DNA of 64,000 nucleotides. Origin: Podarcis tiliguerta. Its lineage: Eukaryota. The stretch lies in NCBI GenBank assembly GCA_965153285.1, contig OZ229111.1; one strand, written 5' to 3'. Below the pieces are notes generated by a model that was given only the letters and a program-made list of their open reading frames with translations, had not been told where the DNA came from and did not search any database. The position numbers were made by a program, and so were the translations under genes. Shown here one piece after another: positions 1,982 to 55,086 of the stretch (its first letter is position 1; the number at the start of each line of letters is the position of its first letter).

Positions 1982-4900
1982 TGTGTGTGTGGTTGACGAA
2001 ATGGAAGCTAAACTAAACTAGGGTGTCACCTTCACCGGTCAATAGAATTGGTGTTAAAGTCCACTGCTTATTCCAGCAGATCAATGCTAATAATTTCTCA
2101 TCAACATTTCAGAACAATCCTGTGACACACCACCCCAATCTCTACAGCAGTGTGAGATTCCAGGCGTCCAGGCACTTAACCCAGGGCCTGAGTTTCCTTT
2201 TTTTTATATATATAAATATTTTTTATTAAGTTTGACATAAAAAAAATAGAGACAACATACAATAAACAGCAAGCAAAACAGAAAAAATACACAATTATCA
2301 AAGAAAGAAAAAAATAAAAAATAAAAACAACAAGAATAAAAACATTAACTTGTTTCTCCGACTTCCCCAAGCCTTCCTTCCCTGTATTCCAAATCATACC
2401 ATCAAACAGCAAATCCCTTCCCTCTGTCTTAATTAAATTTTTATCTTAATTTAAATATCCTAATTTAGATTGTTCAATTCTTATATCTTAAAATGTTGGA
2501 TCTTTTAATTTTTGAAATTTTTAACTAATAACCTTTTACATTCAATCTGATGTCCTTCTAACATTCATTAATCTTATAATATTTCTGTAAATAATCTTTG
2601 AACTTCTTCCAATCCTCTTTCACCGTCTCTTCTCCCTGGTCTCTGATTCTGCCAGTCATTTCAGCCAGTTCCATATAGTCGATTACTTTCATCTGCCATT
2701 CTTCCAGAGTGGGTAGTTCTTGTGTCTTCCAATGCTGTGCGATGAGTATTCTTGCTGCTGCTGTAGCATACATAAAAAAAGTCCTATCTTTCTTTTGCAC
2801 CTGTTGGCCGACCATGCCCAGAAGAAAGGCCTCTGGTTTCTTCAGAAAGGTGTATTTAAACACTTTTTTCATTTCATTATAGATCATCTCCCAAAATGTC
2901 TTAATCCTTGGGCATGTCCACCAAAGGTGGAAGAAAGTTCCTTCAGTTTCTTTACATTTCCAACATTTATTATCGGGCAAATGATAGATTTTTGCTAACC
3001 TGACGGGTCATGTACCATCTGTATATCATTTTCATAATATTCTCTCATAAGGCATTACATGCCGTAAATTTCATACCAGTGGTCCATAACCGTTCCCAGT
3101 CAGCCAGCATTATATTGTGCCCATCTTGTGCCCATTTAATCATTGCGGATTTCACCATCTCATCCTGTGTATTCCATTTCAACAGCAAGTTATACATTCT
3201 TGACAAGGTCTTAGTTTTGGATTCTAGCAATTCTGTTTCCAATTTTGATTTTTCCACCTGGAAGCCAATTTTCCTATCCAATTTATAAGCCTCCATTATC
3301 TGATAGTAATGAAGCCAATCACGGACTTTACTTTTTAGTTTGTCAAAACTCTGCAGTTTCAATTTATCTCCCTCTTGTTCTAAGATCTCCCAATATTTTG
3401 GCCAGTTGGCCTCCATATTGAGTCTTTTTAAAGCTTTTGCTTCCATTGGTGACAGCCACCTTGGGGTCTTATTTTCAAATAAATCTTTATATCTATTCCA
3501 TACGTTAAACAGTGCTTTCCTGACAATGTGAATTTTAAACATTCATTTTAAACATTTTAAACATTCTATGCACTTTAACTTTGTCATACCATAAATATGC
3601 AGGCCAACCAAACACATTATTAAATCCTTCTAAATCTAATATATCTGTATTTTCAAGAAGTAGCCATTCCTTCAGCCAGCAGAAAGCTGCTGCTTCGTAA
3701 TCGTGCTGTGCCGCCAGAGCACGATTTCTGTTCTCATCCTGTAGCAAAGTTCTTAACCTGAGGTACTATTTCTGGGTTAGCGGAGTCTGTAACCTGAAGT
3801 GTATGTAACCTGAGGTAACACTGTACTAAAACAAGCAATGAGGAGAGAAATTAGAAGAAAAGGAGGAGGGTAAAACTGTTCCAGCTAAGGAAAAGATGCT
3901 AGGGCAAACAAGAGGGAAGGGGGTGTTGAAACAAAGCCACTGTGCAGCTGATCAGCAAGCGATCAGGAGAGAGATAAGGGACGCTAGCGATAAAGGAGGC
4001 TGCCTGGAAGCGGGGAGGTAAAAGCACATGGATCCTCAGGATTTTTGCATTGGGTCACCCCAAATTAACCATCAAATCACATAGCATGTCCATGGCTACA
4101 GCCTGCACCCAAAAAAACATGCATCCACTGTTTCGTGGGGTCGCAATGGCGCAAAAACGTGGTTACAAGTCATAGAATCATAGAGTTGGAAGAGACCACA
4201 AGGGCCATCGAGTCCAACCCCCTGCCAAGCAGGAAACACCATCAGAGCATTCCTGACATATGGTTGTCAAGCCTCTGCTTAAAGACCTCCAAAGAAGGAG
4301 ACTCCACCACACTCTTTGGCAGCAAATTCCACTGTCGAACAGCTCTTACTGTCAGGAAGTTCTTCCTAATGTTTAGGTGGAATCTTCTTTCTTGTAGTTT
4401 GGATCCATTGCTCCGTGTCCGCTTCTCTGGAGCAGCAGAAAACAACCTTTCTCCCTCCTCTACATGACATCCTTTTATATATTTGAACATGGCTATCATA
4501 TCACCCCTTAACCTCCTCTTCTCCAGGCTAAACATGCCCAGCTCCCTTAGCCGTTCCTCATAAGGCATCATTTCCAGGCCTTTTGGTTGCCCTCCTCTGG
4601 ACACGTTCCAGTTTGTCAGTGTCCTTTTTGAACTGTGGTGCCCAGAACTGGACACAGTACTCCAGGTGAGGTCTGACCAGAGCAGAATACAGTGGCACTA
4701 TTACTTCCCTTGATCTAGATGCTATACTCCTATTGATGCAGCCCAGAATTGCATTGGCTTTTTTAGCTGCCGCGTCACACTGTTGGCTCATGTCAAGTTT
4801 GTGGTCAACCAAGACTCCTAGATCCTTTTCACATGTACTGCTCTCAAGCCAGGTGTCACCCATCTTGTATTTGTGCCTCTCATTTTTTTTGCCCAAGTGC

Positions 4901-7900
4901 AATACTTTACATTTCTCCCTGTTAAAGTTCATCTTGTTTGTTTTGGCCCAGTTCTCTAATCTGTCAAGGTCGTTTTGAAGTGTGATCCTGTCCTCTGGGG
5001 TGTTAGCCACCCCTCCCAGTTTGGTGTCATCTGCAAATTTGATCAGGATGCCCTTGGGTCCATCATCCAAGTCGTTGATAAAGATGTTGAATAAGACCGG
5101 GCCCAAGACAGAACCCTGTGGCACCCCACTAGTCACTCTTCTCCAGGATGAAGAGGAACCATTGATGAGCACCCTTTGGGTCCGGTCAGTGAGCCAGTTA
5201 CAAATCCACTGAGTGGTAGCATAGTCAAGACCACATTTTACCAGCTTCTTTACAAGAATATCATGGGGCACCTTGTCAAATGCCTTGCTGAAATTAAGGT
5301 AGGCTACATCCACTGCGTTCCCTTCATCTACCAGGCTTGTAATTCTGTCAAAAAACGAGATCAGGTTAGTCTGACATGACTTATTTTTCAGAAATCCATG
5401 CTGACTATTGGTGATCACAGCATTCCTTTCTAGGTGCTCACAGACTGCTTAATGATCTGCTCCAGAATATTCCCTGGTATTGATGTCAGACTGACTGGGC
5501 GATAATTATTTGGGTCCTCTCTTTTCCCCTTTTTGAAAATAGGGACAACATTAGCCCTTCTCCAGTCTGCCGGGACTTCGCCTGTTCTCCAGGAATTCTC
5601 AAAGATGACTGCCAGTGGTTCTGAGATCACATCTGCCAGTTCTTTAAATACTCTTGGATGCAGTTCATCTGGCCCTGGAGACTTGAATGCATCTAAACTA
5701 TTCTTGTACTATCTCCTTAGTTATTTTGGGCTGTGTTTCCTCTGCTGAATCATTTGCTCCAAATTCTTCAGGTCGGGCATTGTTTTCCTTATCGGAGAAG
5801 ACTGAGGCAAAGAAGGCATTGAGGAGTTCAGCCCTTTCTGTGTCCCCTGTTTGCATTTCACCATCTTCTCCTCTGAGTGACCCCACTGTTTCTTTGTTCT
5901 TCCTTTTGCTACAGACATACCCATAAAAGCCTTTTTTGTTGCTTTTAACCTCTCTAGCAAGCCTGAGTTCATTCTGTGCTTTAGCTTTTCTGACTTTGTG
6001 TCTACATGTGCTGGCTATTTGTTTGAATTCCTCTTTAGTGGTTTCCCCCCTTTCCCATTTTTTGTACACATCCTTTTTTAATCTTAACTCTGTTAAAAGT
6101 TCTTTAGATAGCCACCCTGGCTTCTTTAGGCACCTTCCATGTCTCATTGGTATTGCCTGAAGTTGTGCTTTTACTATCTCCCTCTTGACAAACTCCCAGC
6201 CATCATGAACTCCCTTTCCTTTTAGTATTACTGTCCATGGGATCTCACCCAGCACTTCCCTAAGTTTTATGAAGTCGGCTTTCTTAAAGTCAAGAAATTG
6301 AGTCCTAGTATGCTTGGCTGCTCCTTTCCACTGTATAGTAAACTTCAGAAGAGCATGATCACTCGCACCTAATGATCCTTCCACTTCTACCCCACTAACC
6401 AGGTCATTAACATTGGTTAGGACCAGATCTAAAATGGCTGTTCCTCTTGTTGCTTCTCCCACTTTCTGGACAATGAAGTTGTCTGCGAGGCCAGTGAGGA
6501 ATCTGTTTGACCTTATGCTCTTGGCTGAGTTTGACATCCAACAAATATCCGGGTAATTGAAGTCCCCCATTACTACTATCTCCCTTCCTTTTGCTTGCTT
6601 GGCCATCTGTTCCAGGAAGGCATCATCTATGTCCTCCGTTTGGCTTGGGGATCTATAGTAAACTCCCACAATGAGGTCTCTGTTATTCTTCTCTCCCTTA
6701 ATTTTGACCCAAATGCTCTTACTTTGGCTTTGAGGTTCTAAATCTTGGATCTCTTCACAGGTATACACATCCCTGACATATAACACCACTCCTCCTCCTT
6801 TCTTGTCTGGTCTGTTTCTCTGAAATAGATTGTATCCCTCCATTATTACATTCCAATCGTGGGACTTATTCCACCAGGTTTCAGTGATGCCTATTATGTC
6901 ATATTTAGTTTGCTGTACCAAGAGCTCAAGCTCATCTTGTTTATTTCCCATGCTTTGCGCATTAGTGTACAGACATTGAAGTCCATTAATCATTCCCCCG
7001 TGTCTTTTATTTAAGGATTTTTTCCTCCCACCACTAGGTCTGCGTGCTGTTTGCTCCATTTGGTCTATGACATTTGGATGATCATCTTCATCAATTGATA
7101 GACTCCTACCTTCAGGAGCACTGTCTCCCTCCCCCACATTAGTCAGTTTAAAGCCCTCCTGATGAGGTTTCTGAGATTTTTGGCAAAAACACTCCTCCCA
7201 ACCGTTGTGAGGTGCAGCCCATCGCTTGCCAGAAGTCCATCTTCAAGAACCTGCAGTCCGTAATCTAAGAATCCAAACCGTTCCTGTTTACACCATTTGC
7301 GAAGCCAGCTGTTCACTTCCACTATTTTCCCCTCTCTCCCTGGGCCACGTCGTTCAACTGGGAGGACAGATGAGATAACAATTTGTGCATTTAATTGCTT
7401 CAATTTCCTGCCCAGAGCCTCGTAGTCTCTTTTGATCTTCTGGAGGCTATTGCTTGCAGTGTCATTGGTTCCCACATGAACCAAGAGGAAGGGGTATTTG
7501 TCAGTGAGTTTTATGATTCCTTGCAGTCGTTCAGTTACATCTTGGATCTTAGCCCCAGGGAGACAGCACACCTCCCGAGACATCTTGTCAGGCCCACAGA
7601 TCACTGCTTCTGTTCCCCTCAGTAGGGAATCCCCTATCACCACTACACGCCTCCTCTTAGGTTTGGTCGGGGTTCTTCCGTGAGCTGTCCGTTCCAAGGT
7701 CGCCTGCACATTCCCTGAGGACTGACTTTGCTGCTCGTCTTCATATACCTGATCGAATGTAATGAGGGAGAGATCCTCAAATGGAGTCTGTTCTTCGTCT
7801 TCCATGCTAGGGGAGAGGATTTCAAAGCAATTGTGTATTTATAAACAATCAGAGCGAACCCTGGGCCTCCTACTTCTTTGAGTCACGTTTCTCCATATAT

Positions 7901-10900
7901 CTGGCACCTGTGTTGGTGAACTAGCCTCCTTCTCACGGGTGTCCCCTGTCTCCTCCTTGGTGGAGACGGTGTTCTCTGTTGCTTCCAAGAAGAGCTCCAG
8001 CTCTCTAATTCTTTGGAGTGTAGCTACACGTTCCTCCAGTTGCTGGACTTTGTCTTTTAAGAGGGCAATCAACATACAATTGCTGCAGGTAAAGCTGCCT
8101 GCAACCTTTGGCAAGATGGCAAACATTGCGCAGGAACCGCAGGCGACTGCAGCTGTTCCCTCACCCTCCATCTTGAGAACGTGTCGTTGGGGGGTGGCTA
8201 CAGTGGTCCTCCATCTTAAAAAGCGTGAAAACAGGACAAATACCCCCCCCCAAAAAAAACCTAGGTCTCCCCCAACAAACGTTTGAGACTAGCTCCCCTA
8301 AACCTAAAAGATGGATCAAACTGCACAAGAAAACCCTTTTTGCTCCTTCTTCAGCTGCTGCCCTGCAAACTCTAATAAGCTCCTCCCACAGCTAATCACC
8401 TGACTCAACAGAAACCCTGCCCCCTCTGACCTTTGCACAGGGAGAGCAGCTAATCAGCCTTCTTCAGCTGCTGCCCTGCAAAGCATGGATCCACATGGAT
8501 TCTCAGGATTTTTGCAAACTCACCGTCAAATCACATATCATGTCTGTGGCCACAGCATGAACCACAAAAATCATACATCCACTGTTTCGTTCAGAATATT
8601 TTTTTTTCTTGTTTTGCTCCTCTAAAAACTAGGTGCGTCTTATGGTCAGGTGCGTCTTATGGAGTGAAAAATACGGTACATTGTTGCCCACAGCAATCGT
8701 GAACCTACCCCCTCCCACTCTGGCACTGTCTTTCTGGCTAACCCAGGGCTCAGGGCGGGGCTCTAGCCATTGCCTTGCACTTTATGGGCCTGGATTAATG
8801 ATTCATCTTCCAGGTTATCACCAGGCTTTGCTTATCTAATAATCAACATGAGCTGCATCCAAACCACAGACTGACTCTCCAACCCTTCATTAATTCTAAT
8901 TAGGGTGCCTCACACCCTACAAACTCACAACAGTACTCTGCCTACTGATATAAGACTCGTCCTTCATGGAAGGAGGTTGAGAGCAAACACCTATAGAGCT
9001 TCCAGTCTGTCTTTCCCCAAGGCAAGGAGCAGAAGCTTTTTGGAGAGTGGATGAGCGGGGTGTAAGTTCTGTCAACCTTTCCAAGGTTTTATATAACTCC
9101 TTTAAAGTACATTCATACTAGCTAGATTCCCATATTCTGTGCCTCTCATTCTCTCCATTTTTTGGCTTATTGACATTGAATATGCCCTTGTGTTTTCTTG
9201 TATTCTCAGGTATGGAAGTTCTGGGATTCGATGAAGACCGCTGCCTTTATACTGGGTCCTGCCCTGCTCATGTTTCTTGCTTTCAGGAACTCAGTCACAT
9301 GGTAAGTCCACCAGGTCCCTGGAGCTCAATAATGGTTTGGCCAAAAGGAAAGCAGCAACTACTACTGTCACAGGATCTCTTTTGTGTTTCAGGCACCTGG
9401 AGAAATTCTGGGGAGCCTCTGGCTTGTTCTGGCAGACTCAGTGGGAGAACTTCTACCACCTCCTAGGGAGAAATGAATGGGCGATTTTCATAGTTTGTGA
9501 GTCACTTTGAACTGAAGTCAGTTATTGTCTGTGTTTTTAATGGCTCTTTCAATTCTGTTAGGATTTAATTCCATTTTAATAATGGTCTTTTCTATGTTCT
9601 TAACTTGTTCTATTTTATCTGTGTAAGCTGCCTGAGTCTCAAATTGGGGGGAAAGGCAGAAATAGTAATATTTGTAATAGTAATAATAAGCTCATTTCTT
9701 ATCTATGTATAAGGGTGGTTTTGAATATAAAAGTTTTCCTGTAATATAATGCCTTGTCATATCTGTTCACCATTGGGCGTGTGCCCCATTGAACCCAAGC
9801 TTGCTGATACACAAGTTAGGCAAAACGTCCTGATTGACCAATAACACATACTGTCCCTATTCCTCCTTTCCTTCACAACATGCAGAGTTATGTGACGTGA
9901 CTTAGTTAAAGGTTTGGGGCTGTGGCCAAGGCACAGATTAACTCTCCAACCCTTCATTAATTCTAATTTTATTGGAACATTATGGTGCCTCACACCCTAC
10001 AAACTCACAACAGTACTCTGCCTACTGATATTACACTCGTCGTTCATGGAAGGAAGTTGGGAGACATTTTGGACTCACAGCTATCCATGGAGGCGCAGAT
10101 CAATTCTGTGGCCAGACAGCTGTCTACCAGCTCCACCTGGTATGCAGGCTGAGATTCTGCCTGCCCACAGACTGTCTCATCAGAGTGGTATGTGCTCTAG
10201 TTATCTCCCGCTTGGACTACTGCAACGTGCTCTACGTGGGGCTACCTTTGAAGGTGACATGGACACTACAACTAATCCAGAATGCGGCAGCTAGACTGGT
10301 GACTGGGAGTGGCCGCCAAGACCACATAACCCTGGTCCTGAAAGACATACACTGGCTCCCAGTATGTTTCCGAGCACAATTCAAAGTGTTGGTGCTGACC
10401 TTTAAAGCCCTAAATTGCCTTGGCCCAGTATACCTAAAGGAGCGTCTCCACCCCCATCGTTCATCCTAGACACTGAGGTCCAGCACCGAGGGCCTTCTGG
10501 TGGTTCCCTCACTGGGAGAAGTGAGGTTACTGGGAACCAGGCAGAGGGCCTTCTTGGTAGTGGTGCCCACCCTGTGGCACACCCTCCCATCAGATGTCAA
10601 GGAAATAAACAACTATCTGACTTTTAGAAGACATCTAAAGGCAGCCCTTTTTAAGGAAGTTTTTAATTTTTGATATTTTGATGCTGTATTATTATTATGG
10701 GTGGGGTATAAATAATAAGGTTGTTGTTGTTGTTATGGTGCTGCATCTCACCAAGGAACCTTTTGCATCTCTTCCTATGTAGCCCACTGGTATAATGCAA
10801 ATAGCAGGGGAACTTGTGGCCTTCCAGAGCAGGGGTCAGCAAGGTTTACCTCGCCTGAGCTGGTTCACTTCCCTCCATGGGCTGGATCGCGCACAATTTC

Positions 10901-13900
10901 CAATATCTGTGTTATGCGCAGATGCAATTTTTGGTGCTGCGTCAGTTTAGTGCAGCATGCGGGGACTCACCGAGCGGGCGGCTCGTGGGCCAGTTAAACG
11001 ACCCCTGTGGGCCGCTTGTGGGCCTTAGGTTGCTGACCCCTGCTCCAGAGGATGTTGGACTACAACTCCTATCAGCCCCAGCCAGCATGGCCAATGCTCA
11101 GGGAGTTGTACTCCAAGAATGTCTGTAGGGCCACAAGTTCCCTACTCCTACTATGAAGCATCAGGCGTGAACGTAAGAGTCTCTAGCAACGTAAGCTCCA
11201 GCAATTGCTCAAGTGAAAGCCACAATGAAATTCAGTTGACAAAAATAGAATTATTCTCTCCCTTCCGCTTGTCCATTTGAACAACATCTATGACTGTGGT
11301 CTCTTCCCATGCCGCTCATTTCCTGCTCTTATCCTTTTCTTATTGAGCTGCTGTCCTCTGGTTAGGAAGTTTACGTTCCATCTCTTGTGTCTGAGCCCAA
11401 AAGAAGCCCTCCTGTCCCCATTCACTCTTTCCCTCTTCTTGTACTACAGGCACTGGGATAATTCCTTTCCTGGTTTTCTGGAGCTTCAATGGAATCTTGC
11501 TGGTAGCAGATGTGACTGGGAAGCCGAGTTTCATCACCCAATACCGCATTCAGTTGGGAAAGAATGATCCTGTGGGTATTTTTTTGCACAAATATGGCAG
11601 CCCTGTGTTTGTTTGTTCTGAGTGGGAGCTGTTGATTCCTCCCCATCACAGATAGCCTTTCTAGCCTTTGTCAGGGGATACATCCAGCAGTTAAAAATAT
11701 GTTGATTTGGGCAGATATCATTTTGTTATTTTTATCTGTTTCTCCAGGAAGTGTCTTCTTCCCTTCGTTAGCTCTGTGCAATAGCGTAGACGAGGATAGA
11801 AAGTGATTGGCCCAAGGTCACAGTCAGAGTGAGCTTCAACTCCCTGCATAGGCCTTACGGAATAAAAATGTTTTCAGCAGGCATTTAAAAATTGGAACGG
11901 AAGGCGGCAGCATTTTTAGTGACTGCTAGTTATTCAAACATTTTCTTTATAGTGGTGGGTAAATTTATCGTCCCAATTGTCCTAACAGAAGATGCACCTT
12001 CAATAAAATAAGAGAACTGTTTCCCAGTCCCACAAAAAAAGCATCAGTGTTGTTCCTGTGCCTTTATCCTAATTGCTCCACAAGGACCATGAAGCCTGAA
12101 TATGCAGTGACTGAAGATTTAGAACTTACCGTATTTTTCGCTCTATTAACATGCACCCGACCATAACACGCACATAAATTTTTAGAGGAGGAAAACAAGA
12201 AAAAAAATATTCTAAACGAAACAGTGGATGTATGATTTTTGTGGTTTATGCTGTGGCCACAGACATGTGATCTGACGGTGAGTTTGGGGTAGCCCAATGC
12301 AAAAATCCTGAGGATCCATGTGGATCTGTGCTTTGTAACCACATTTTTGCACCACTGCGGCCCCAGGCAACAGTGCGTGTGTGATTTTTTTGGTGTAAGA
12401 TGTAGCCATGGACATGCTATGTGATCTGATGGTGAATTTGGGGTGACCCAGTGCAAAAATCCTGAGGATCCATGTGGATCCGTGCTTTGTAACCACGTTT
12501 TAAGTGGGGAGGGAAGGAAAAGCACTCAAGGGACAAGGAACACGCGTGGGGTGGGTGAAGAAGGATGCTGTTAATAATGCAGAAGAGGGGTATAAAAGGA
12601 GAAGGCTCTTATAGGAGGAGTGGGGAGAAGAGAGGGACAGAGAGCCTGCTTGCGAAAAACTGCTGTTATTTAGCGAGTGGGGAGGAGAGATGGACAGAGA
12701 GCCTGCTTGCGAAAAACTTTGCTGCTATTTAGCGAGTGGGGAGGAGAGAGGGACAGAGAGCCTGCTTGCGAAAAACTTTGCTGCTATTTAGCGAGAGGGG
12801 AGGAGAGAGGGACAGAGAGCCTGCTTGCTTTAAAGGAGCCAACCAGACAGGAGCCTCTTACACTCGTGTAAGCGGCTCCTCTCCTCTCCTCTCCCGCTTT
12901 GCTCCTTTAAAGCAGGCTCTCTGTCCCTCTCTCCTCCCCACTCAGTGGCTCTTCTCCTGCTTTGCTGTTTCAAAGCGAGCCACGGAGGAGGAAAGGAAGG
13001 GGAACCATGGATCCTCTGCTCACGACTGCAGCAGATCCCCCCACGCCACCCGTAGGCATTCCCTCCGTAACACGCACAGACATTTCCCATTACTTTCTAG
13101 GAGGAAAAAAGTGAGTGTTATGGTGCGAAAAATACGGTAAAGCCTTTTTATTTGGCAAGTAGAGAGGAAAAGCCACTTCAAGCCTCTAACTGTAGCCAAG
13201 AGTCTTCCAGGCTTGCAGAATGTTCCTCCCAGCATAGGCGGTGCTGTTCCACATTTTGACCCAGGTTCATTTTGCCTCTCCCCCTAGGTGGACAGAAAAA
13301 AACTGCAGAATGTCATACGAACAGCCCTGTTCAATGATTTTTTCATCTCTCTGCCCATGATTATCCTCATGCTCCCTATCATGAAATGGAGGGGGGAGCC
13401 ATGCAGTTTGCACTTGCCCACTTTCCATAGGTTTCTTCTCGAGCTGGCAATCTTTACGCTATTGGAGGAAATTCTCTTCTATTACTCTCACCGGTAAGGC
13501 GCACATTACATTGAGGTAACATGCTGGGCTCCCCTCCTGGGAAAGCCAGTGTGGTGTAGTGGCTAAGAGCGGTGGACTCGTAATCTGGTGAACTGGGTTC
13601 GATTCCCTGCTCCTCCACATGCAGCTGCTGGGTGACCTTGGGCCAGTCACACTTCTCTGAAGTCTCTCAGCCTCACTCACCTCACAGAGTGTTTGTTGTG
13701 GGGGAGGAAGGGAAAGGAGAATGTTAGCCGCTTTGAGATTCCTTAGGGTAGTGATAAAGCGGAATATCAAATCCAAACTCCTCCTCCTCCTCTTCTAATG
13801 TGCAGTATTCTACAGGCTAGATTTAGACTGGCATTTTAAGGCTCTGGTTTCCACGCCTTCAAAAAAGTTATTTTCTAGTTAAACATAGCTAACAGGATGC

Positions 13901-32900: not shown

Positions 32901-35900
32901 CGTAAAAGGAGCGCACAGCCTAGCCCTCCCTCCAGCTGTTATTTCTACTACTCCTCTTTATTTCCAGCTCACTTCCAGTACCACGCCCTACATTTAAAGT
33001 ACATGGCTTAGCCTAAAGAATTCCGGGAACTATAGTTTTCCCCTCCCCCACAGCTCCAATTCCCAGCACCCACAACAAACTGGTTCTCAGGATTCTGCGT
33101 GGGAGAAACCATGTGTTTTAAAAGTCTGGTGTGTATACACAGCCAGAGCCAGAACAGGGGAAGTGGGGCAAGAGCAACCAATTATGGGAAGTTGAGCCAG
33201 AGGAGGAGAGATGGTTCTGCATATTTCTCTCCCATCTTTTTCATTTACAAGAAGGCCTTGCACCCATAGGCCAGTGAGGCCTGTAGTTACGGTAATTTGC
33301 AATTTCAAACTGCACATTAGGAAACACCTTCTAGTAATCTGTACGTGCTCAACAAAGCCTCCTTAGGCACCCACACCTAACATAATTCCTCTCTGTGAAG
33401 CAAGAAGCAAAATGTATAGTATGCTTGGTCCTGATCATCTTTTTGTAAAGTAAGCCCTCAAGTGGGAAATACAGAAGGATTCTCTGATTTGCTGCAGCCA
33501 GCACTGAACAGCTGCAGTCCCTTCAGCAGCAACTCGTATGTTCCCATCTCAAACATCTGCCACCAGATCATCCAAGGCCAGCCTTAATAAGGACTGCATA
33601 TTTAAGTTGTAGGTCTGTGTTTAGTAGCTGATCTTTGCATGCTCTCAAATGTTGCAAGAGCTCCCTCTGGGAAGCAGCTGAGCAATTACCTCTGGCAGCT
33701 ATTCATTTCTGAAAATAAGAGGCACCACAATCTGCTGGCTGGTAAGCCTGAAAGCCCTTCTTCCTTACCCGGATTACTCAGTGGAAAAGTGAATGACATT
33801 TGGCATGTGCTCAGAGGCACTGTTTCACTGAGTGAATACAGATTCCAGAGCTAGAACAAGCAGGGTTCAAATAAAGTCTTAACAAACAAGTGGCATAAAA
33901 CTGCAAGGGGTTAAGGAGACAAAGTCTTCATCCAGTATGTGCCTATGGACTACACTCATAGAATTTTGCACCTAAAAAGTCAGCTTTGCCAAAATTCACC
34001 ACCCCAAGCAAGGGAAGATGAGACAACAGCACAACAGAAAGTCTTAAAAGCAATTGCTCCAGAGAGGAAGACAAGACAGCACGTGAAAGCATTTGAGGCA
34101 TAATAGGTTGCAAGCACAATGGCAGAATAAAGGCTGAAAATTAAGGGCCAGTTTAAACAATACATCAGAAATGTTTGGGAGGGGAGAATATTACCTGTTT
34201 GATACTACACATACTCAGACGTATATAAACAGAGTATGCCAAAACATGTTAGTTTGTCAGGGACCAGAAAGCCCGCAATGCCAGCATGATAACATGACAT
34301 GCACAAGTACTGTCAATTCAGATTCTAAACAACACATTGTCAAAACTGCACATGTATTATTTTTCAGCAAGTCCAGAATCATGTTTAAAACTAGGCCTAA
34401 GTAACAAAAAAGCACGGCATGGGTGTGATGCAAGGCGGAAGGAAACAATTACGTAGTGTGAAGACTTCTTACAAACAGGTGGTGGTACTTATTGTTTGGA
34501 ATCCATAACCAGGGTTATCATATATTATATATCGAAAAAGATACAATAAAAGAAACTGAACAATACTTTCATACTCAAGATAAAAGCATATAGGAACATA
34601 GTTAATGACTGCTGGTTCCAATTCTATCTTCTTTCATCAGTCACTTCCACACAAAGGAAGCAGAAAAAGGTAGAAGAGACAACTTGCATGTTAGTTATGT
34701 TCCCAGGGCAAACAGATGCTTGTCAGATCCACTGCTTGCAATGTTCCCAACTCAGTTACATATAGGTGGGTTGGCAAGTGATTTTAATACTTTTTGCGCA
34801 AGGCACAAGTAATATTATCTCATAAACTGTGAAAATTAAACCACCGTTGAACTAAAAATATGATCAAGACAAAGTACATACAACCCCTTTTCCCGCTCTC
34901 AGAACACAACCATTTTTGTTTGCGCTACGGTGGTGCACCCCTGGTTCTCACCTTTATCTGAGAGTACTCTGGCTCAAACTGCTCTGTCCACAGATCCTGC
35001 TCATAGTAGTACAGCCCATCATTGATCACCTTAGCCAACTCTGAGCTCATCTTCGCCCTGGATGTGTGGTTGCCCGTTCTATCTCCCCCCGGATGCCGGC
35101 GCAGATAAGGGGGTGTCTGTGTTACAATCAAAATCTTATTCACGTCTCTGTCATCAATTTCGTAGTCTGAATCCTCATCTGACCAATCTGTAAAGGTGTT
35201 TTTTCGGCCATCCATCTGTTCCATCTCCTCATCAAACATGAAGTCCAGCTCCTCAGGCTCATCCTGATCTTTCTGCTTCACTGGCGTTTTGGATTCTTCT
35301 GGTTTCTGGTTTCAAAATACATAATGCTGTTAAGACAGAAGCTGCTGGGACACTGATCACAGAAGACTTAGCTAGGGGATCCTATGCAGCAAAACAACAC
35401 AGGCACAGTTTCAACCTCAAAACAAAGGTCAATGCCTAACAAACCAAACACACCCTGGTCACATAAAGCCCAGCCCACCATATGACCATCTTCCACCCAT
35501 CATGATCCTCCAGGCACAGCAACCCTTCTATAGATGCTCATCCTTCAAGCATAGCAAACCAGCCTTGGGGCCTTAAAGTAGAACCCTGCACAGCTATAAC
35601 TCCAAGAGACGTGAACCAGCATCTAAAGCTCACAAAATTCAATAGTACAAATTACAGAAAAAGGATAGATGGAATTATGAAGTAGTCTGTGTGCAGGAAT
35701 AACTCTTTTGGGAAAGGGCAGAAACACCATCTCCCTACCCAGCATGTTTGACACAACTAAGGAGAGAAAGTGCCACATAAACGTTCTAGAACAGGGGTCG
35801 GCAACTATGGCCCGGGGGCTGGATATGGCCCACCAGGCTCGTAAATCCAGCTTGCAGACCCTGCCACCCGCTCAGTCAGTCCCCGCACTGAGCTAAACCA

Positions 35901-38900
35901 GTGCGGCGTTTCCTTGAAAAGAAGCCGCGGATGCCTCTGGGCGGGCAGCGACGCTGGCGTGGCTTCGGATTGGCTGCAGGAAGTTCCCGCGGCCAATCCA
36001 AAGCCTCACCACCCGCACACTGAGGTAAATCCGGCGCGGCCATGGATGGAGAGGCCAGTGGGCAGGCGGCAGGTCTGGGCTGCACCATGGGCATTGTGAC
36101 GGGCGCGTCGTGGGGCTTCAGCTGGAGCGTGCCCGGTTCAGCGTTGCCGCTGGTGGCATCATCGGCGGCCGAGCTGGAGTAGCTGGAGGATGAGCTGCAC
36201 ACTGCCTGCCCGGCGCTCTGCATGCGCGGCCTGCCCACAGACCCGGCCTCGGACGATGGGCCACAGCATGTGGTGCATACCGCCTGGGAGCTCTGAAGGA
36301 CAGGCTGATGGAACAGCTGCTGCTTGCCAACAATGCCGGTGAGCGGGCGGTGCTGAGACATGCTCCTGAGCACATGCAGAGTGTGTTCCTCCTCCAGGTC
36401 CAGAGGCAGCTGCAGGACCGGCTTGGAGGGTATTTCTATTTTTCAAAATATAGTCTGGCCCCCCACAAGGTCTGAGGAACAGTGGACTGGCCCCCTGATG
36501 AAGAAGTTTGCTGACCCCTGTTCTAGAACCTCCTATGTCTAGGAGCATTAAATGTGTCCAATTGCAGGTCTGACATACATGAGGATGTCAGCTAATGCAA
36601 TTCACCAACTACCTTGGGTCTGATTGGAGAAGGCCTAGGCCTCTTCTTCACTTCAATCCATGCTTCAGAGTCCAAGTCTGGCAGGCTGGCAGAAAGGCCT
36701 TTGGGCATTGTCTTCAGATTACTAACTTCCTCTGTCTTCGTTGGCACAGGACTAGCAGAGCGGGGAGACCCAGGAGCAGATTCTGTAACATGGTATTTCA
36801 GTAAAAGATAAATATCTGTACATGCAGGCAACAGCCCTTTACAAAATACCCACAAGGATAAGCCTGGTGCTGTGAATAGCATGTGCTTTGCAACAGAGTA
36901 CGGGTGGCAACTTTCACCTCCCTTTACAGAGCTATCATGAACATCTGAGATGAGTGCAGAGCTTTGGCTATTTGAATATTTTCTACTTAATTTGTATTAA
37001 GCACTCATGAAAAATTGTTGGTTCTATTATATGATCCTTAGAATTTTTGCCTAAGCCTTACATAGCCCTGGCTAATTATGAAGTAGCTTTCCTTTCACCA
37101 GCTGAGACTCCCATTTCTCTACAGGGAAGAATGCTAGAAATATATAAAATGTTTTCACCACCTGCCTGAAGAACAACAAAGAAGGGGCCAGTCTAACCAT
37201 CCTTGGGAGGGAGTTCCAAAATGAGAGCACTACAACAACAAATGCTTGTATCTCCACCTAGCGCACCTGCCTTGGTGGTGCAATACATGGAAGAGCTATG
37301 CTAAAGATTACTGTAACTGATGGGCAGGTTCATACAGAAGCTGTTGAAATATCTTGGCCCCAAGCCACTTAAGGTGTTACAGTTATAAGCCAGCACCTTT
37401 ATCTGGACCTAGAAATCAACTGAAAGGAAGTGCAATTTTTATGGTCAGAAAAAATGAGCACCAGAAATTAAGTATAACTACCAAGAGTGGTGGTATCCAA
37501 GGGGGGCTTTGTCAATAAAAACCTTACAACTGTTTCCTTTAATGGAGTTAGAAAGCAGCTCTCATGCAGAGAAGCATTAACAGTCTCTGCAATCCAAACA
37601 GCCAGCCCTCCTCTAGCACTTTTACTCAGCGAAGATGTATATGGATTTAAAACGCAAGTGGTTGGTCTCAATCTTCAAAGCAATTTGTCCACATCCTCAA
37701 GCTCAATATTTAAGTCACTAAAATAGCAGACGTCTTAGATCAGGTGTTCTTAACCTGTGGAGGTCCATGGAACCCCTAGGTGGTCAATGGAGGGCTTCAG
37801 GGGGTGAACCAGGAACACACAAAAATTCCAATGCAATAAAATAAATTGTTTTGTGTGCATGTGTATTTTTCTGGGGAGGTGTTCCATAGTTTTCATCAGA
37901 TTCCAACAGGGGTACATAACCCCAGAAAGGTTGGGAACTGCTGAGCTATAGATTCAGCTCAGATATAAGCAATTTTATTGGCAAATTATTTTGTCAACTG
38001 GCCACAGCGAGCTGCCTAAGGTTCCTCCTCATCACCTTGGGGACTAGTATTTAATATTCCCTTCACCATTTAAAACAGCTTTGCTGGCCAATACTGTGCT
38101 CATCAGGCATACACCAAGAACAAAACAGAACACAATGCCTGCTCAGCAACACACAACACACTCAACTTGAGTGTGAGGCATAGGGCTGTACCTTTCAAGG
38201 TCTTGATCAATTATATTTCCAAGAAGCTCTCAAAGCCAGCACAAAGGGAATCAGACATTATTTTTCTTAGAAGAATCTGTCTCCTAATGGATTGAGATCA
38301 CCCATTATTTACATGACTGGATAGCAATACAGTCGTACCTTGGAAGTCAAACGGAATCAGTTCCGGAAGTCCGGAAGGCTTCCAATCGGAAGCCCCATCG
38401 GATGTTCGGCTTCCAAAAGAACTTTCGAAAACCGGAACAGTCACTTCCGGGTTTCAGTCGTTCAGGAGCCAAAACATTTGAGAATTAAAAAACAGGATGT
38501 ACACATTACATGTTCAAGAAAGTCTTGATAGAACAGTGCAGTCAACTTTGTGTGCACGTGTTCGTTAAGTAAAGCTGAAGTTTTGCTAACCATTATGCAA
38601 GATACATAATGGTGTCCTGGTCTCAAATTCATCACCACCAACACAAATAAAACTGCTTGGGTAGAGTTTCTAAAACACTATCAACAAACCTGTTTCCTTT
38701 TGGAAGCTTTGCCTGGGCACAAACTCTGGGCAGTTGATGAGCTGAGAGAAGTCAGTCTGTGCATAGTCTGTCATGGGAGGGCCAGGTAAAGGCCATTTTT
38801 CTGGTTCTTCCTTTCTCCTGATTTTCTGGTCCACAATCTCTACCACTTTGCTGTCTTTCAATGCCTGAAAAACAATCACTGTCAGCATTAATACTAAAGT

Positions 38901-41900
38901 AAGATACCCTTCTCCCTCTCTTTCTCCCACATGCCCTCTCCCTACTCCCCACAGAAACAGAGACGTATATTTAATACTGCGTATAAAGGTTCACCTTCCT
39001 TTTTCTTCAGACCATTGTTTGTTTACAAAAAAATTTCTCTAACACCCTTGATTGTGCAGACAGAGAAATCCCAGCAGAAGTATGCAAATAATATCAATGC
39101 AGAACAGAGCTGCAAGCCCTGTCTTACAGCTATTTAAAGCCTCAGTCTTCAAAATGCAACTGCATCCTGAAAACTGCAAGCATGCAGTTGGCAGAATGCA
39201 TGAACTACCTTTTGCATAACTGCAAAGAACACAAGTCTGCATAGACATTTGCCACTCTGCTTTGATCATCTTGCTCTGAGGTATATCAGGACATGCCCAA
39301 GGGTCTGAAAAGCGCATTTCAGTCTTGACTGCCCAGCACTCCACTACAAGTGGCCCAAATAAGAAACACAGGGTAATTTTTTACCTTAATTATGAGGCCA
39401 ACATCTGTAGTCAAGGCCTGCACCCGATGGAAACTGGCAATCAGAGTGATGGGAAGAAAGCCTTCTGTATCCATTTTCCGTCTCAGGAAAAAATCTCGTT
39501 CCAAGTTGTCAACACTGAAGTAGTACTCTCTGAACACAGCAAATAGTAGACGATGAAAATAACACACACACACACGGACCAGGTAACACTTAACAGAATA
39601 AATACCTCTGACCTCCTGAAAATTCCACCTCTCTTTCTGTTTACTAATACTTTACAAAAATAGGTAATTCCCAAGCTCTCTTTCAGCACTGGATGCTATG
39701 GGGAAAATTCCAGGACCATAGCTCAAGACATGTCCACATGAATAAGTATATATTTTATACTGTATTTTCAATATTCTTAGGCCCCCTTTCAGGTTTATTT
39801 TCCCCACTATGAAATACAATAATTAAAACCATTTGAACAACAAACTGCAACATTTAACAACACACATTATTACATCTATCATTTCAAAAGATTCTAACAG
39901 AATCCTTTAATATCAACAATAAAATATAAAACAAGCAGCAGAAAATCCCCTGAATACTAATAAAAATATTGATTCAGCCCTGCAGAATGTATTCATGTAG
40001 GCAGAAGAAAACTCATCATTTCCTCCTTTCTTCTCTAGTTTCAACTAAAACTAGCCCAAACTAAGCTAATTCTGCATGAGTAAAAGAAGCTGAATGACAT
40101 TCTAAGAAAAAATAACACCTGAAGGACGCAAATCCTGAATTCAGCTGTTCTAGGATTTGGTAAGTAGTCCAACTTGCGTGTCATGCTCTAACTAATGGGC
40201 TGCCAACTTCTGAAGTTCGTGGGAACCAAACACTTAGGGGCATTTCTGTTTAGCTATGCAGTGCCCAGGGAGTCCAGGCTACCCCTTGAAGGGGAAAGCA
40301 AGGCTACCCGTCTCCTCAGGGCAGCCAATCTCAATTCTACCAGGTTTCAACACATGAAAAAGGTGATTCATTCTCTTCCTCTGCACATCAGGACAGAGTG
40401 CAGATACTGAAGGTGTAGGGTGCAACTTCCACCAAAAGGCAAGCTTTCCTTTTCTAGGAAGCAGGCACTACTACCACTGATTCAACAGAGGCATTAGCTG
40501 GCATCAAGTACAATGATATGTTTCTAGAGAGGCAATTTATGTCAGAGGCTGCTCACTTTTCCTGCTAGAGTCTTAACTGGAAGTGCAGGGCATGGCTATG
40601 GAGACTGCCACCGTTGATTCAGGGGCCAGCAAAAATCTTGCATATTTCCAATGGGCCACCCTGTTATAAACAGTTGTGCCAGTGTACCCACTGGCACGTA
40701 TTCACAGGCTGTGATGGTGGTACAAGAATCCCCATTCTATCTACTTTTACTTTGTAGAACCTCAAGAATGAGGATGAAGACCATTGTCTTTGCAAGCACA
40801 ACTCCCAACTTTTAATCTACAACGAAAAGGTATAAAACTAGCTACAACTCTTCAAAAGGCAAATACTGTTTAGTTAGCTACTGCTAGAATCAAAACCAAC
40901 ACTTACATCTGCCGTTTGATATAATCCTTGAGCAACTCTTGGTCAACACTGTACAGCTCAGTGCTACTGATGTTGTCAAAATAGTAAGTGATATTACTGG
41001 TGTATTTCTGAGTGCGTGAGCCATCGGAGCCATCAAATTTCCGGTAACCGTACTGATAATCAAAGTGAGCTGCAGGGGGAAAGAAGCAAAAGGAAATTTC
41101 TTAAGACCTCAACTTTTCTAAGACCACTCTACGCTGTCAATATCCACAGATTAGGAGAACCAGGCTTGCAGCAGCCTAATTTAGGAACTGGAAAAGGCAC
41201 TGACATTTTCTTTTGGAAAGACCATTTTAAACAGAATTGCAATGCGAGATCCTCAGAAAATATGCATCTAGCACTGGCCAAGCAAAACAAAGTTGCACTA
41301 TATAATAACAGAGGTTCACAACTAGCCACTTCCTGAATGACTATTATATTTGTAATATATATTTGAGAATCTACAAAAAGTCTGTTTTCTTAGTGTAGTA
41401 GCTTTTTAGTTCAAAATGCTCAGTTAACTAGTATGGTTGCATTTCCAGTGGCAATAAATTTACACAAAAATTACATGAACAATGCTCTTTAATGGTACAC
41501 TTGTTTTAGTGCATCTACTCAAACTGTGCTGAGTCACAGTCCGGCCAAAATAATGCAACTGATCCCTAGCCATTGATATTCCAAGTGGGGGAAGAAATTT
41601 GTTGTCTGCCAGCTCTTTATCTATAGCATCAACCACATCCTGTACACAAAGCCACAATTATAAAAAATATCACGGTCTTATACGTACAGCGAGTACCTCC
41701 TCTTCCTCGCCCTCTCCCTCGTCCCCGACCACGGCCTCTGCCCCGGAAGGAACCACGCACAGTTGCTCCCTCACTCTTGACACTAGAGGTTTCATCATGG
41801 TCAGGCCAGCTTCGTTCATGTTTGTTATCCAGATGCCAACCTGCAAGAGAATGTTAGAGATGAGCATATCCCTAAGAGCCGTGAAATGCTTGGGAGATGC

Positions 41901-54855: not shown

Positions 54856-55086
54856 CATGGGTAGGCAAACTAAGGCCCAATTGCTTTCTAAATCCAGCCC
54901 GCAGACAGTCCGGGAAACAGCATGTTTTTACATGAGTAGAATGTGTGCTTTTATTTAAAATGCATCTCTGGGTTATTTGTGGGGCATAGGAATTCGTTCA
55001 TTTTTTTCTTCAAAATATAGTCCGGCCCCCCACAAGGTCTGAGGTACAGTGGACTGGCCCCCTGCTGGAAAAGTTGTTGACCCCTG
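54856..55086. mobile_element. hAT MITE, cargo-free relative of the 35792-36520 element
   Basis: CATGGGTAGGCAAAC...GTTGTTGACCCCTG; TSD ctgtagcc/ctctagcc; shared 3' subterminal ~80 nt. Confidence 0.85.

Follow-up and report, generated by a model that had tools for sequence, protein, structure and literature searches.

A non-autonomous hAT element of Podarcis tiliguerta with a decayed cargo that probably derives from the 5' end of the sepiapterin reductase gene

In this study, we analyzed a stretch of 64,000 nucleotides from Podarcis tiliguerta (NCBI GenBank assembly GCA_965153285.1, contig OZ229111.1), referred to below as the window, and examined a DNA transposon of the hAT superfamily located at 35792-36520. 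The evidence supported that this transposon is a non-autonomous hAT element carrying foreign gene-like cargo, and the cargo itself, judged from its sequence, very probably derives from the gene for sepiapterin reductase (SPR). The element is a Pack-hAT, and a good but not unprecedented example of the capture of a gene fragment in animals. Taking the transposon and its cargo together, we consider it likely that a hAT element here carries the 5' end of SPR. The coding capacity of the captured piece is dead, as CpG transitions have altered its cofactor motif and as it contains one in-frame stop and one frameshift.

With a length of 729 bp, the element is enclosed by a perfect 8-bp direct repeat, TTCTAGAA, which abuts both of its ends at 35784-35791 and 36521-36528 (35784-36528 with this target-site duplication, TSD, included). 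Its termini, CAGGGGTCRGCAA, form terminal inverted repeats (TIRs) of 13 nt that are complementary at 12 of 13 positions, with the 5' TIR CAGGGGTCGGCAA at 35792-35804 on the plus strand and the 3' TIR CAGGGGTCAGCAA at 36508-36520 on the minus strand. An 8-bp TSD and a short TIR beginning with CAG are both hAT characters, and the duplicated target fits the pattern nTnnnnAn and the target consensus NTCTAGAN of lizard hAT families (Novick et al., 2010; PMC3014272). The size, the hAT-type TIRs and the perfect TSD that had been given in a preliminary description of this DNA were thus recovered at the same positions. The window matched the TIR pattern 10 times where 2.9 matches were expected, and a count of 10 was not attained in any of 100 shuffles. 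Two of the window's matches, at 223-235 and 40620-40632, were isolated, each having one mismatch and lying without a nearby partner TIR, and these may be truncated elements or chance. No transposase open reading frame (ORF) was found within the 729-bp element or among the ten long ORFs of the window that were scanned, and the element is classed as non-autonomous because such an ORF is absent inside it.

The closest described lizard families in terms of ends are hAT-HT2 and hAT-N4_AC (Novick et al., 2010; PMC3014272), whose TIR likewise starts CAGGGGTC, whose TSD is likewise 8 bp long with the consensus NTCTAGAN, and in which non-autonomous elements of 700-800 bp exist. The families differ from the present element at TIR positions 9-10, which read CC/CY there and GG/AG here. 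In the same work, the capture that was reported was of filler DNA in the hobo and Helitron families only, and not of host exons (Novick et al., 2010; PMC3014272).

The inner boundaries of the transposon were set by its relatives in the window, which are miniature inverted-repeat transposable elements (MITEs) free of cargo. The 3' arm (36434-36520, plus strand) was about 90% identical to the 3' part (55001-55086) of a 231-bp MITE at 54856-55086 on the plus strand, with 82 bp aligned and an E-value of about 1e-26; this MITE has a TSD of its own, CTGTAGCC and CTCTAGCC, agreeing at 7 of 8 positions, and the earlier claim that it is a cargo-free relative with the same 3' arm held. The first ~67 bp of the 5' arm (35792-35859) were similar to the same MITE, and the adjoining 35863-35898 matched an arm of a second cargo-free MITE at an equal distance from the terminus (E 2.5e-4). 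The second MITE lies at 10830-11042 on the plus strand and is 213 bp long, with identical TIRs (CAGGGGTCAGCAA) and a TSD, TTCCAGAG and CTCCAGAG, that again agrees at 7 of 8 positions. Because 35863-35898 matches this arm, the 5' transposon arm extends to ~35898 (35792-35898, plus strand), and the cargo, which had earlier been taken to begin at 35860, begins instead at ~35899, some 40 bp further in. At 35806-35838 the 5' arm is ~18 bp longer than its cargo-free relative, and TATGGCCC occurs at 35806 and again at 35824; this surplus looks like a small internal duplication.

Between the arms lies the captured cargo of ~534 bp (35899-36433, plus strand), each boundary being fuzzy by ~10 bp. It has no match to either cargo-free MITE, differs in composition, and stands in place of ~95 bp of AT-rich internal MITE sequence (~41% of a 231-bp backbone). 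Host sequence that does not belong to transposable elements (TEs), lying between TE termini, together with cargo-free TE relatives, is what characterizes a Pack-TIR, and both are present here. The 5' arm is a mosaic of likenesses to two different MITEs of the window, which might suggest that two unrelated half-MITEs came by chance to lie on either side of a piece of a duplicated SPR pseudogene. This arrangement is extremely improbable and close to refuted, as a perfect 8-bp TSD stands directly outside matched inverted TIRs, and as independent insertions would each have brought their own TSD and inner ends, whereas inner TIRs were not found.

The cargo contains a decayed SPR-like first coding exon at 36042-36338 on the plus strand, which opens with an ATG in the Kozak context gccATGg. 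Reading from this ATG gives 46 residues, then a TAG at 36180-36182, and then 31 residues before the frame changes. The remnant of the cofactor-binding motif, TGASWGF (36099-36119, plus strand), stands opposite TGASRGF of mouse SPR. A frameshift in the zone 36276-36286, as placed by comparison with SPR, takes the reading from the 36042 frame to the 36041 frame, where a further 19 residues, including LLLANNA, end in AAT GCC G|GTGAG at 36338|36339. The motif NNAG (36329-36340, plus strand) is completed across this point, its Gly codon being split G|GT by the donor, and it lies 77 codons from TGASWGFS, which starts at 36099 and whose final motif G has been lost by a CpG transition. Classical SDRs have a cofactor motif TGxxxGxG near the N-terminus and NNAG some 75-85 residues further on, and the spacing in the cargo agrees with this. 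The reading as a short-chain dehydrogenase/reductase (SDR) stops at the donor, and the frame past 36339 gives no SDR continuation. All the peptide strings that had been quoted from ATG 36042 were present, and the single frameshift that had been reported could be placed at ~36276-36286. Of the two stops that had been counted, TAG 36180 is in frame, but TGA 36294 falls outside the homologous frame, the reading having already shifted by ~36284. A 27-bp deletion has probably also occurred in the exon; mammalian SPR probably agrees with the colinear alignment proposed earlier for the mid-exon part, in which ~9 codons are missing after GF.

From the donor GTGAG onward, the cargo continues as an intron-like tail at 36339-36433 on the plus strand, which presumably represents the start of an intron. 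Since the cargo runs on past the donor into non-coding sequence, it fits a source in genomic DNA rather than in mRNA, in line with what had been proposed for it before.

Several lines of evidence bear on whether the parent gene was SPR. The stop-free pieces of the exon were searched separately, piece 1 being the 46 residues from 36042, piece 2 covering 36183-36293 and piece 3 covering 36269-36340. When piece 1 was compared by phmmer with 177,635 distinct PDB sequences, three matches with E<=10 were returned, with mouse SPR in first and second place (1sep, E 0.39; 1nas/1oaa, E 0.97). These were the only PDB matches with E<1, and they aligned residues 8-31 of the piece with residues 2-25 of SPR, with GLGC, TGAS and GF identical between the two. 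SPR presumably accounts for only a few of the PDB sequences, by our estimate. Because SPR had been named beforehand and is rare in that collection, the match carries weight through which protein was found and where it aligned. SPR, a classical SDR with the mouse structures 1sep, 1nas and 1oaa, shares with the cargo the N-terminal pattern GLGC..(V/L)TGAS.GF, the NNAG motif and a phase-1 end of exon 1 after the first G of a Gly codon; it differs in that the cargo holds the first exon only, in a disabled state, and is a gene fragment, not a gene.

The mismatches in the motif region were also informative. They comprise W for R, S for G and W for R, and one CpG transition separates each of the codons concerned, TGG, AGC and TGG, from its counterpart CGG, GGC or CGG. 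The three differences are as would be expected if a motif TGASRGFGR had undergone methylation-driven decay. In addition, when the cargo was shuffled 20,000 times with its dinucleotides preserved, TGAS.G followed 180-300 nt later by NNAG on the same strand never arose, the frequencies for the single motifs being 0.035 and 0.003. The Gly102 codon of human SPR begins at c.304 (c.304G>T being p.G102C; PMC5676966), and the intron-1 donor is c.304+1 (PMC6454308). The exon-like part of the cargo ends in the same way as human SPR exon 1, in phase 1 after the first base, G, of a Gly codon, with GTGAG next in the cargo, and the phase-1 donor that had been noted at 36338|36339 was thereby upheld. Gly102 of human SPR is probably the G of NNAG.

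Other results weigh against an origin in SPR. On its own, E=0.39 is at noise level, and two wrong-frame ORFs of the cargo gave unrelated matches, with E=1.4 and 2. Neither Pfam nor NCBIfam yielded a family for any of the three stop-free pieces even at E<=10, and the PDB search found nothing with piece 2 (36183-36293) or piece 3 (36269-36340). Against 1.84 billion representatives, phmmer with piece 1 gave one match, an irrelevant low-complexity repeat protein of 457 residues; the ESM Atlas gave no usable match to piece 1; and a word-index search with a 52-residue stop-free stretch gave no candidate within a length window that leaves out full-length SPR. The motifs of the shuffle test were picked after the sequence had been read. 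The alignment to SPR covered the first 24 aligned residues, colinearity through the middle of the exon is tentative, and the capture breakpoints, any junction microhomology and the intron identity of 36339-36433 are putative.

It might be speculated from these results that the cargo comes from the 5' end of some other short-chain dehydrogenase gene, or is a GC-rich sequence with a chance resemblance, given that E=0.39 is comparable to the wrong-frame controls and that no profile or large-database search recognized any piece. We regard this as quite improbable. The two top PDB matches belong to the predicted family and lie at its N-terminus, CpG transitions account for all three motif differences, the motif pair did not recur in the shuffles, and both the exon end and its phase equal those of human SPR. 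Moreover, GF in TGAS.GF is typical of SPR, and other classical SDRs usually have GIG. The earlier identification of the cargo as SPR exon 1 therefore stands in part: the N-terminal half of an SDR is present, and its best matches, the only ones with E<1, are SPR, but the statistics are marginal. Descent of the cargo from SPR remains, in our judgment, very probable.

Motifs of later SDR exons (YxxxK context, PGPxDT, NISS) were absent from every frame of the window, and the cargo is therefore an isolated 5' fragment. The alternative that the window contains the native SPR gene was rejected, as there was neither a second match to the cargo nor a later-exon SDR motif.

In composition, too, the interior of the element is unlike the non-coding DNA around it, a putative intron, as had been stated previously. 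Its GC content is 0.64-0.70 and its ratio of observed to expected CpG (CpG o/e) 0.65-0.90, compared with 0.44 and 0.09-0.13 in the flanks and a CpG o/e of 0.27 across the window. The cargo, with 41 CpGs, is the one large CpG island of the window, and the sole other stretch that passed the island filter is the 213-bp MITE at 10830-11042. This MITE has no cargo, yet its GC content is 0.56-0.58 and its CpG o/e 0.7, the interval 10801-11050 passing the filter; some calls of "CpG-island cargo in a MITE" elsewhere in the genome may accordingly be cargo-free elements.

The part of the cargo in front of the exon (35899-36041, plus strand; CpG o/e ~0.9) resembles a promoter with 5' untranslated region (5'UTR), and its features make a promoter role plausible. 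A GC box, GGGCGG, is located at 35939-35944, and two inverted CCAAT boxes, ATTGG at 35969-35973 and CCAAT at 35993-35997, both lie inside a 28-nt imperfect palindrome. This palindrome (35955-36011) has arms of 28 nt that are 82% complementary around a 1-nt spacer, and the CCAAT boxes enclose a GGAAGT core at a spacing of 20 bp, an arrangement that looks like a core promoter of NF-Y/ETS type. A second partial copy of a transposon arm just 5' of the ATG was considered and rejected as chance, as its alignment score was equalled by 132 of 500 shuffles. Two long ORFs run over the cargo on the minus strand, at 35876-36373 (165 aa) and 36159-36548 (129 aa), and these are probably a by-product of GC content. 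The 165-aa ORF had 82 word-sharing candidates in a collection of 5.8 billion proteins, none of which was significant. A moderate age fits the arms, which are ~10% diverged from the relative, and the CpG o/e of 0.65-0.9 in the cargo, and protection from methylation need not be invoked. Any present activity of the copy would be regulatory or at the RNA level (promoter plus splice donor).

Considering the structure of the element and the content of the cargo, we propose a plausible model for the capture. A short internal segment of a MITE backbone of ~190 bp would have been replaced by ~534 bp of host genomic DNA, comprising the core promoter and 5'UTR of SPR, its first coding exon in full and ~95 bp from the start of intron 1. 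The most likely route would be template switching while a double-strand break within the element was being repaired, by gap filling or by synthesis-dependent strand annealing onto an ectopic template in open chromatin. The loaded element would then have been inserted at the TTCTAGAA target, with hAT transposase supplied in trans.

The order of these events might also have been the reverse. An empty MITE may have inserted first and received the SPR fragment only afterwards, at its present site, when a break inside it was repaired by transposition-independent gap filling, so that the loaded element never moved. Tan et al. judged this to be the route of most single-copy animal Pack-TIRs, with an empty orthologous TE in 94% of primate cases (Tan et al., 2021; PMC8277862), and the TSD is compatible with both histories. 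However, 57% of such cases lie <=15 kb from their parent, and here neither a second copy of the cargo nor another SDR exon was present in the 35 kb upstream or in the 27 kb downstream. Furthermore, the replaced part of the backbone, ~95 of 231 bp (~41%), contrasts with gap-filled cases, where the gap has a median of 4.6% of the TE. None of these points is decisive, and we consider filling in place to be possible, though rather unlikely. Carriage of the SPR 5' end by a hAT element continues to be the reading that we regard as likely.

Previous work on animal genomes provides a context for this element. Tan et al. reported 370 animal Pack-TIRs in 100 genomes, of which 208 were hAT (Tan et al., 2021; PMC8277862), so the statement in the preliminary description that such capture is much less documented in vertebrates than in plants needs to be qualified; the only lizard genome in that survey, with 0 hAT elements annotated, contributed 0 Pack-TIRs. 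The present element resembles animal Pack-TIRs, of which hAT is the commonest carrier, in that host gene DNA of a few hundred bp lies inside a TIR transposon with its TSD. Cargo from 5' ends has been documented among them as well, and some family members are free of cargo. In the frog, Pack-hAT-N8_XT captured 291 bp of the CAPSL 5'UTR and was amplified to three loci (Tan et al., 2021; PMC8277862). The cargo of that element is a piece of untranslated region, in contrast to the promoter-like part, complete first exon and donor that are combined here.

Pack-MULE and Pack-TYPE elements of plants (PMC8903248) are similar in being non-autonomous TIR elements with gene fragments, the cargo of which often keeps its exon-intron structure. 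They differ in belonging to the Mutator and CACTA superfamilies, with TSDs of 9 bp or 3 bp, and to another kingdom. Plant families of this kind are often high-copy and transcribed, whereas the lizard element is known from the sequence of one copy. Plant Pack-type elements are biased to GC-rich 5' gene ends.

Exons and promoters can arise anew, and transcripts can become chimeric, through the capture of gene fragments by DNA transposons, a process that is well charted in plants. The copy described here is cleanly delimited by its TSD, its TIRs, its empty relatives and a cargo of promoter-like sequence, exon 1 and donor, and could seed a search across the whole genome. Should the element with its cargo be multicopy, it would be added to the small number of transposition-dependent Pack-TIRs known from vertebrates, which made up 4 of 281 unique cases in the survey (Tan et al., 2021; PMC8277862). 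A broader suggestion is that hAT-type MITE families of this genome repeatedly load CpG-island promoters together with first exons and donors and then transpose, and that the SPR 5' end occurs in at least two dispersed copies. We hold this suggestion to be doubtful and put it forward tentatively. If it were true, repeated loading of promoters and first exons would be a vertebrate counterpart of the rice Pack-MULEs, and dispersed SPR 5' ends could supply promoters or first exons to other sites, or give rise to antisense or small RNA directed at a pterin-pigment gene. What makes SPR interesting is that regulatory variation immediately upstream of it underlies the orange morph of the wall lizard (PMC6431182), and a link between the decayed SPR copy and lizard colour morphs is speculation.

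The ten long ORFs of the window were also scanned for a host gene, and the endonuclease and reverse transcriptase of a long interspersed nuclear element (LINE) at 4.5-7.1 kb were the only products recognized. This LINE lies on the minus strand at 4558-7137, with Exo_endo_phos (E 3e-16) and RVT_1 (E 8e-25) in adjacent ORFs, and probably extends to about 8170.

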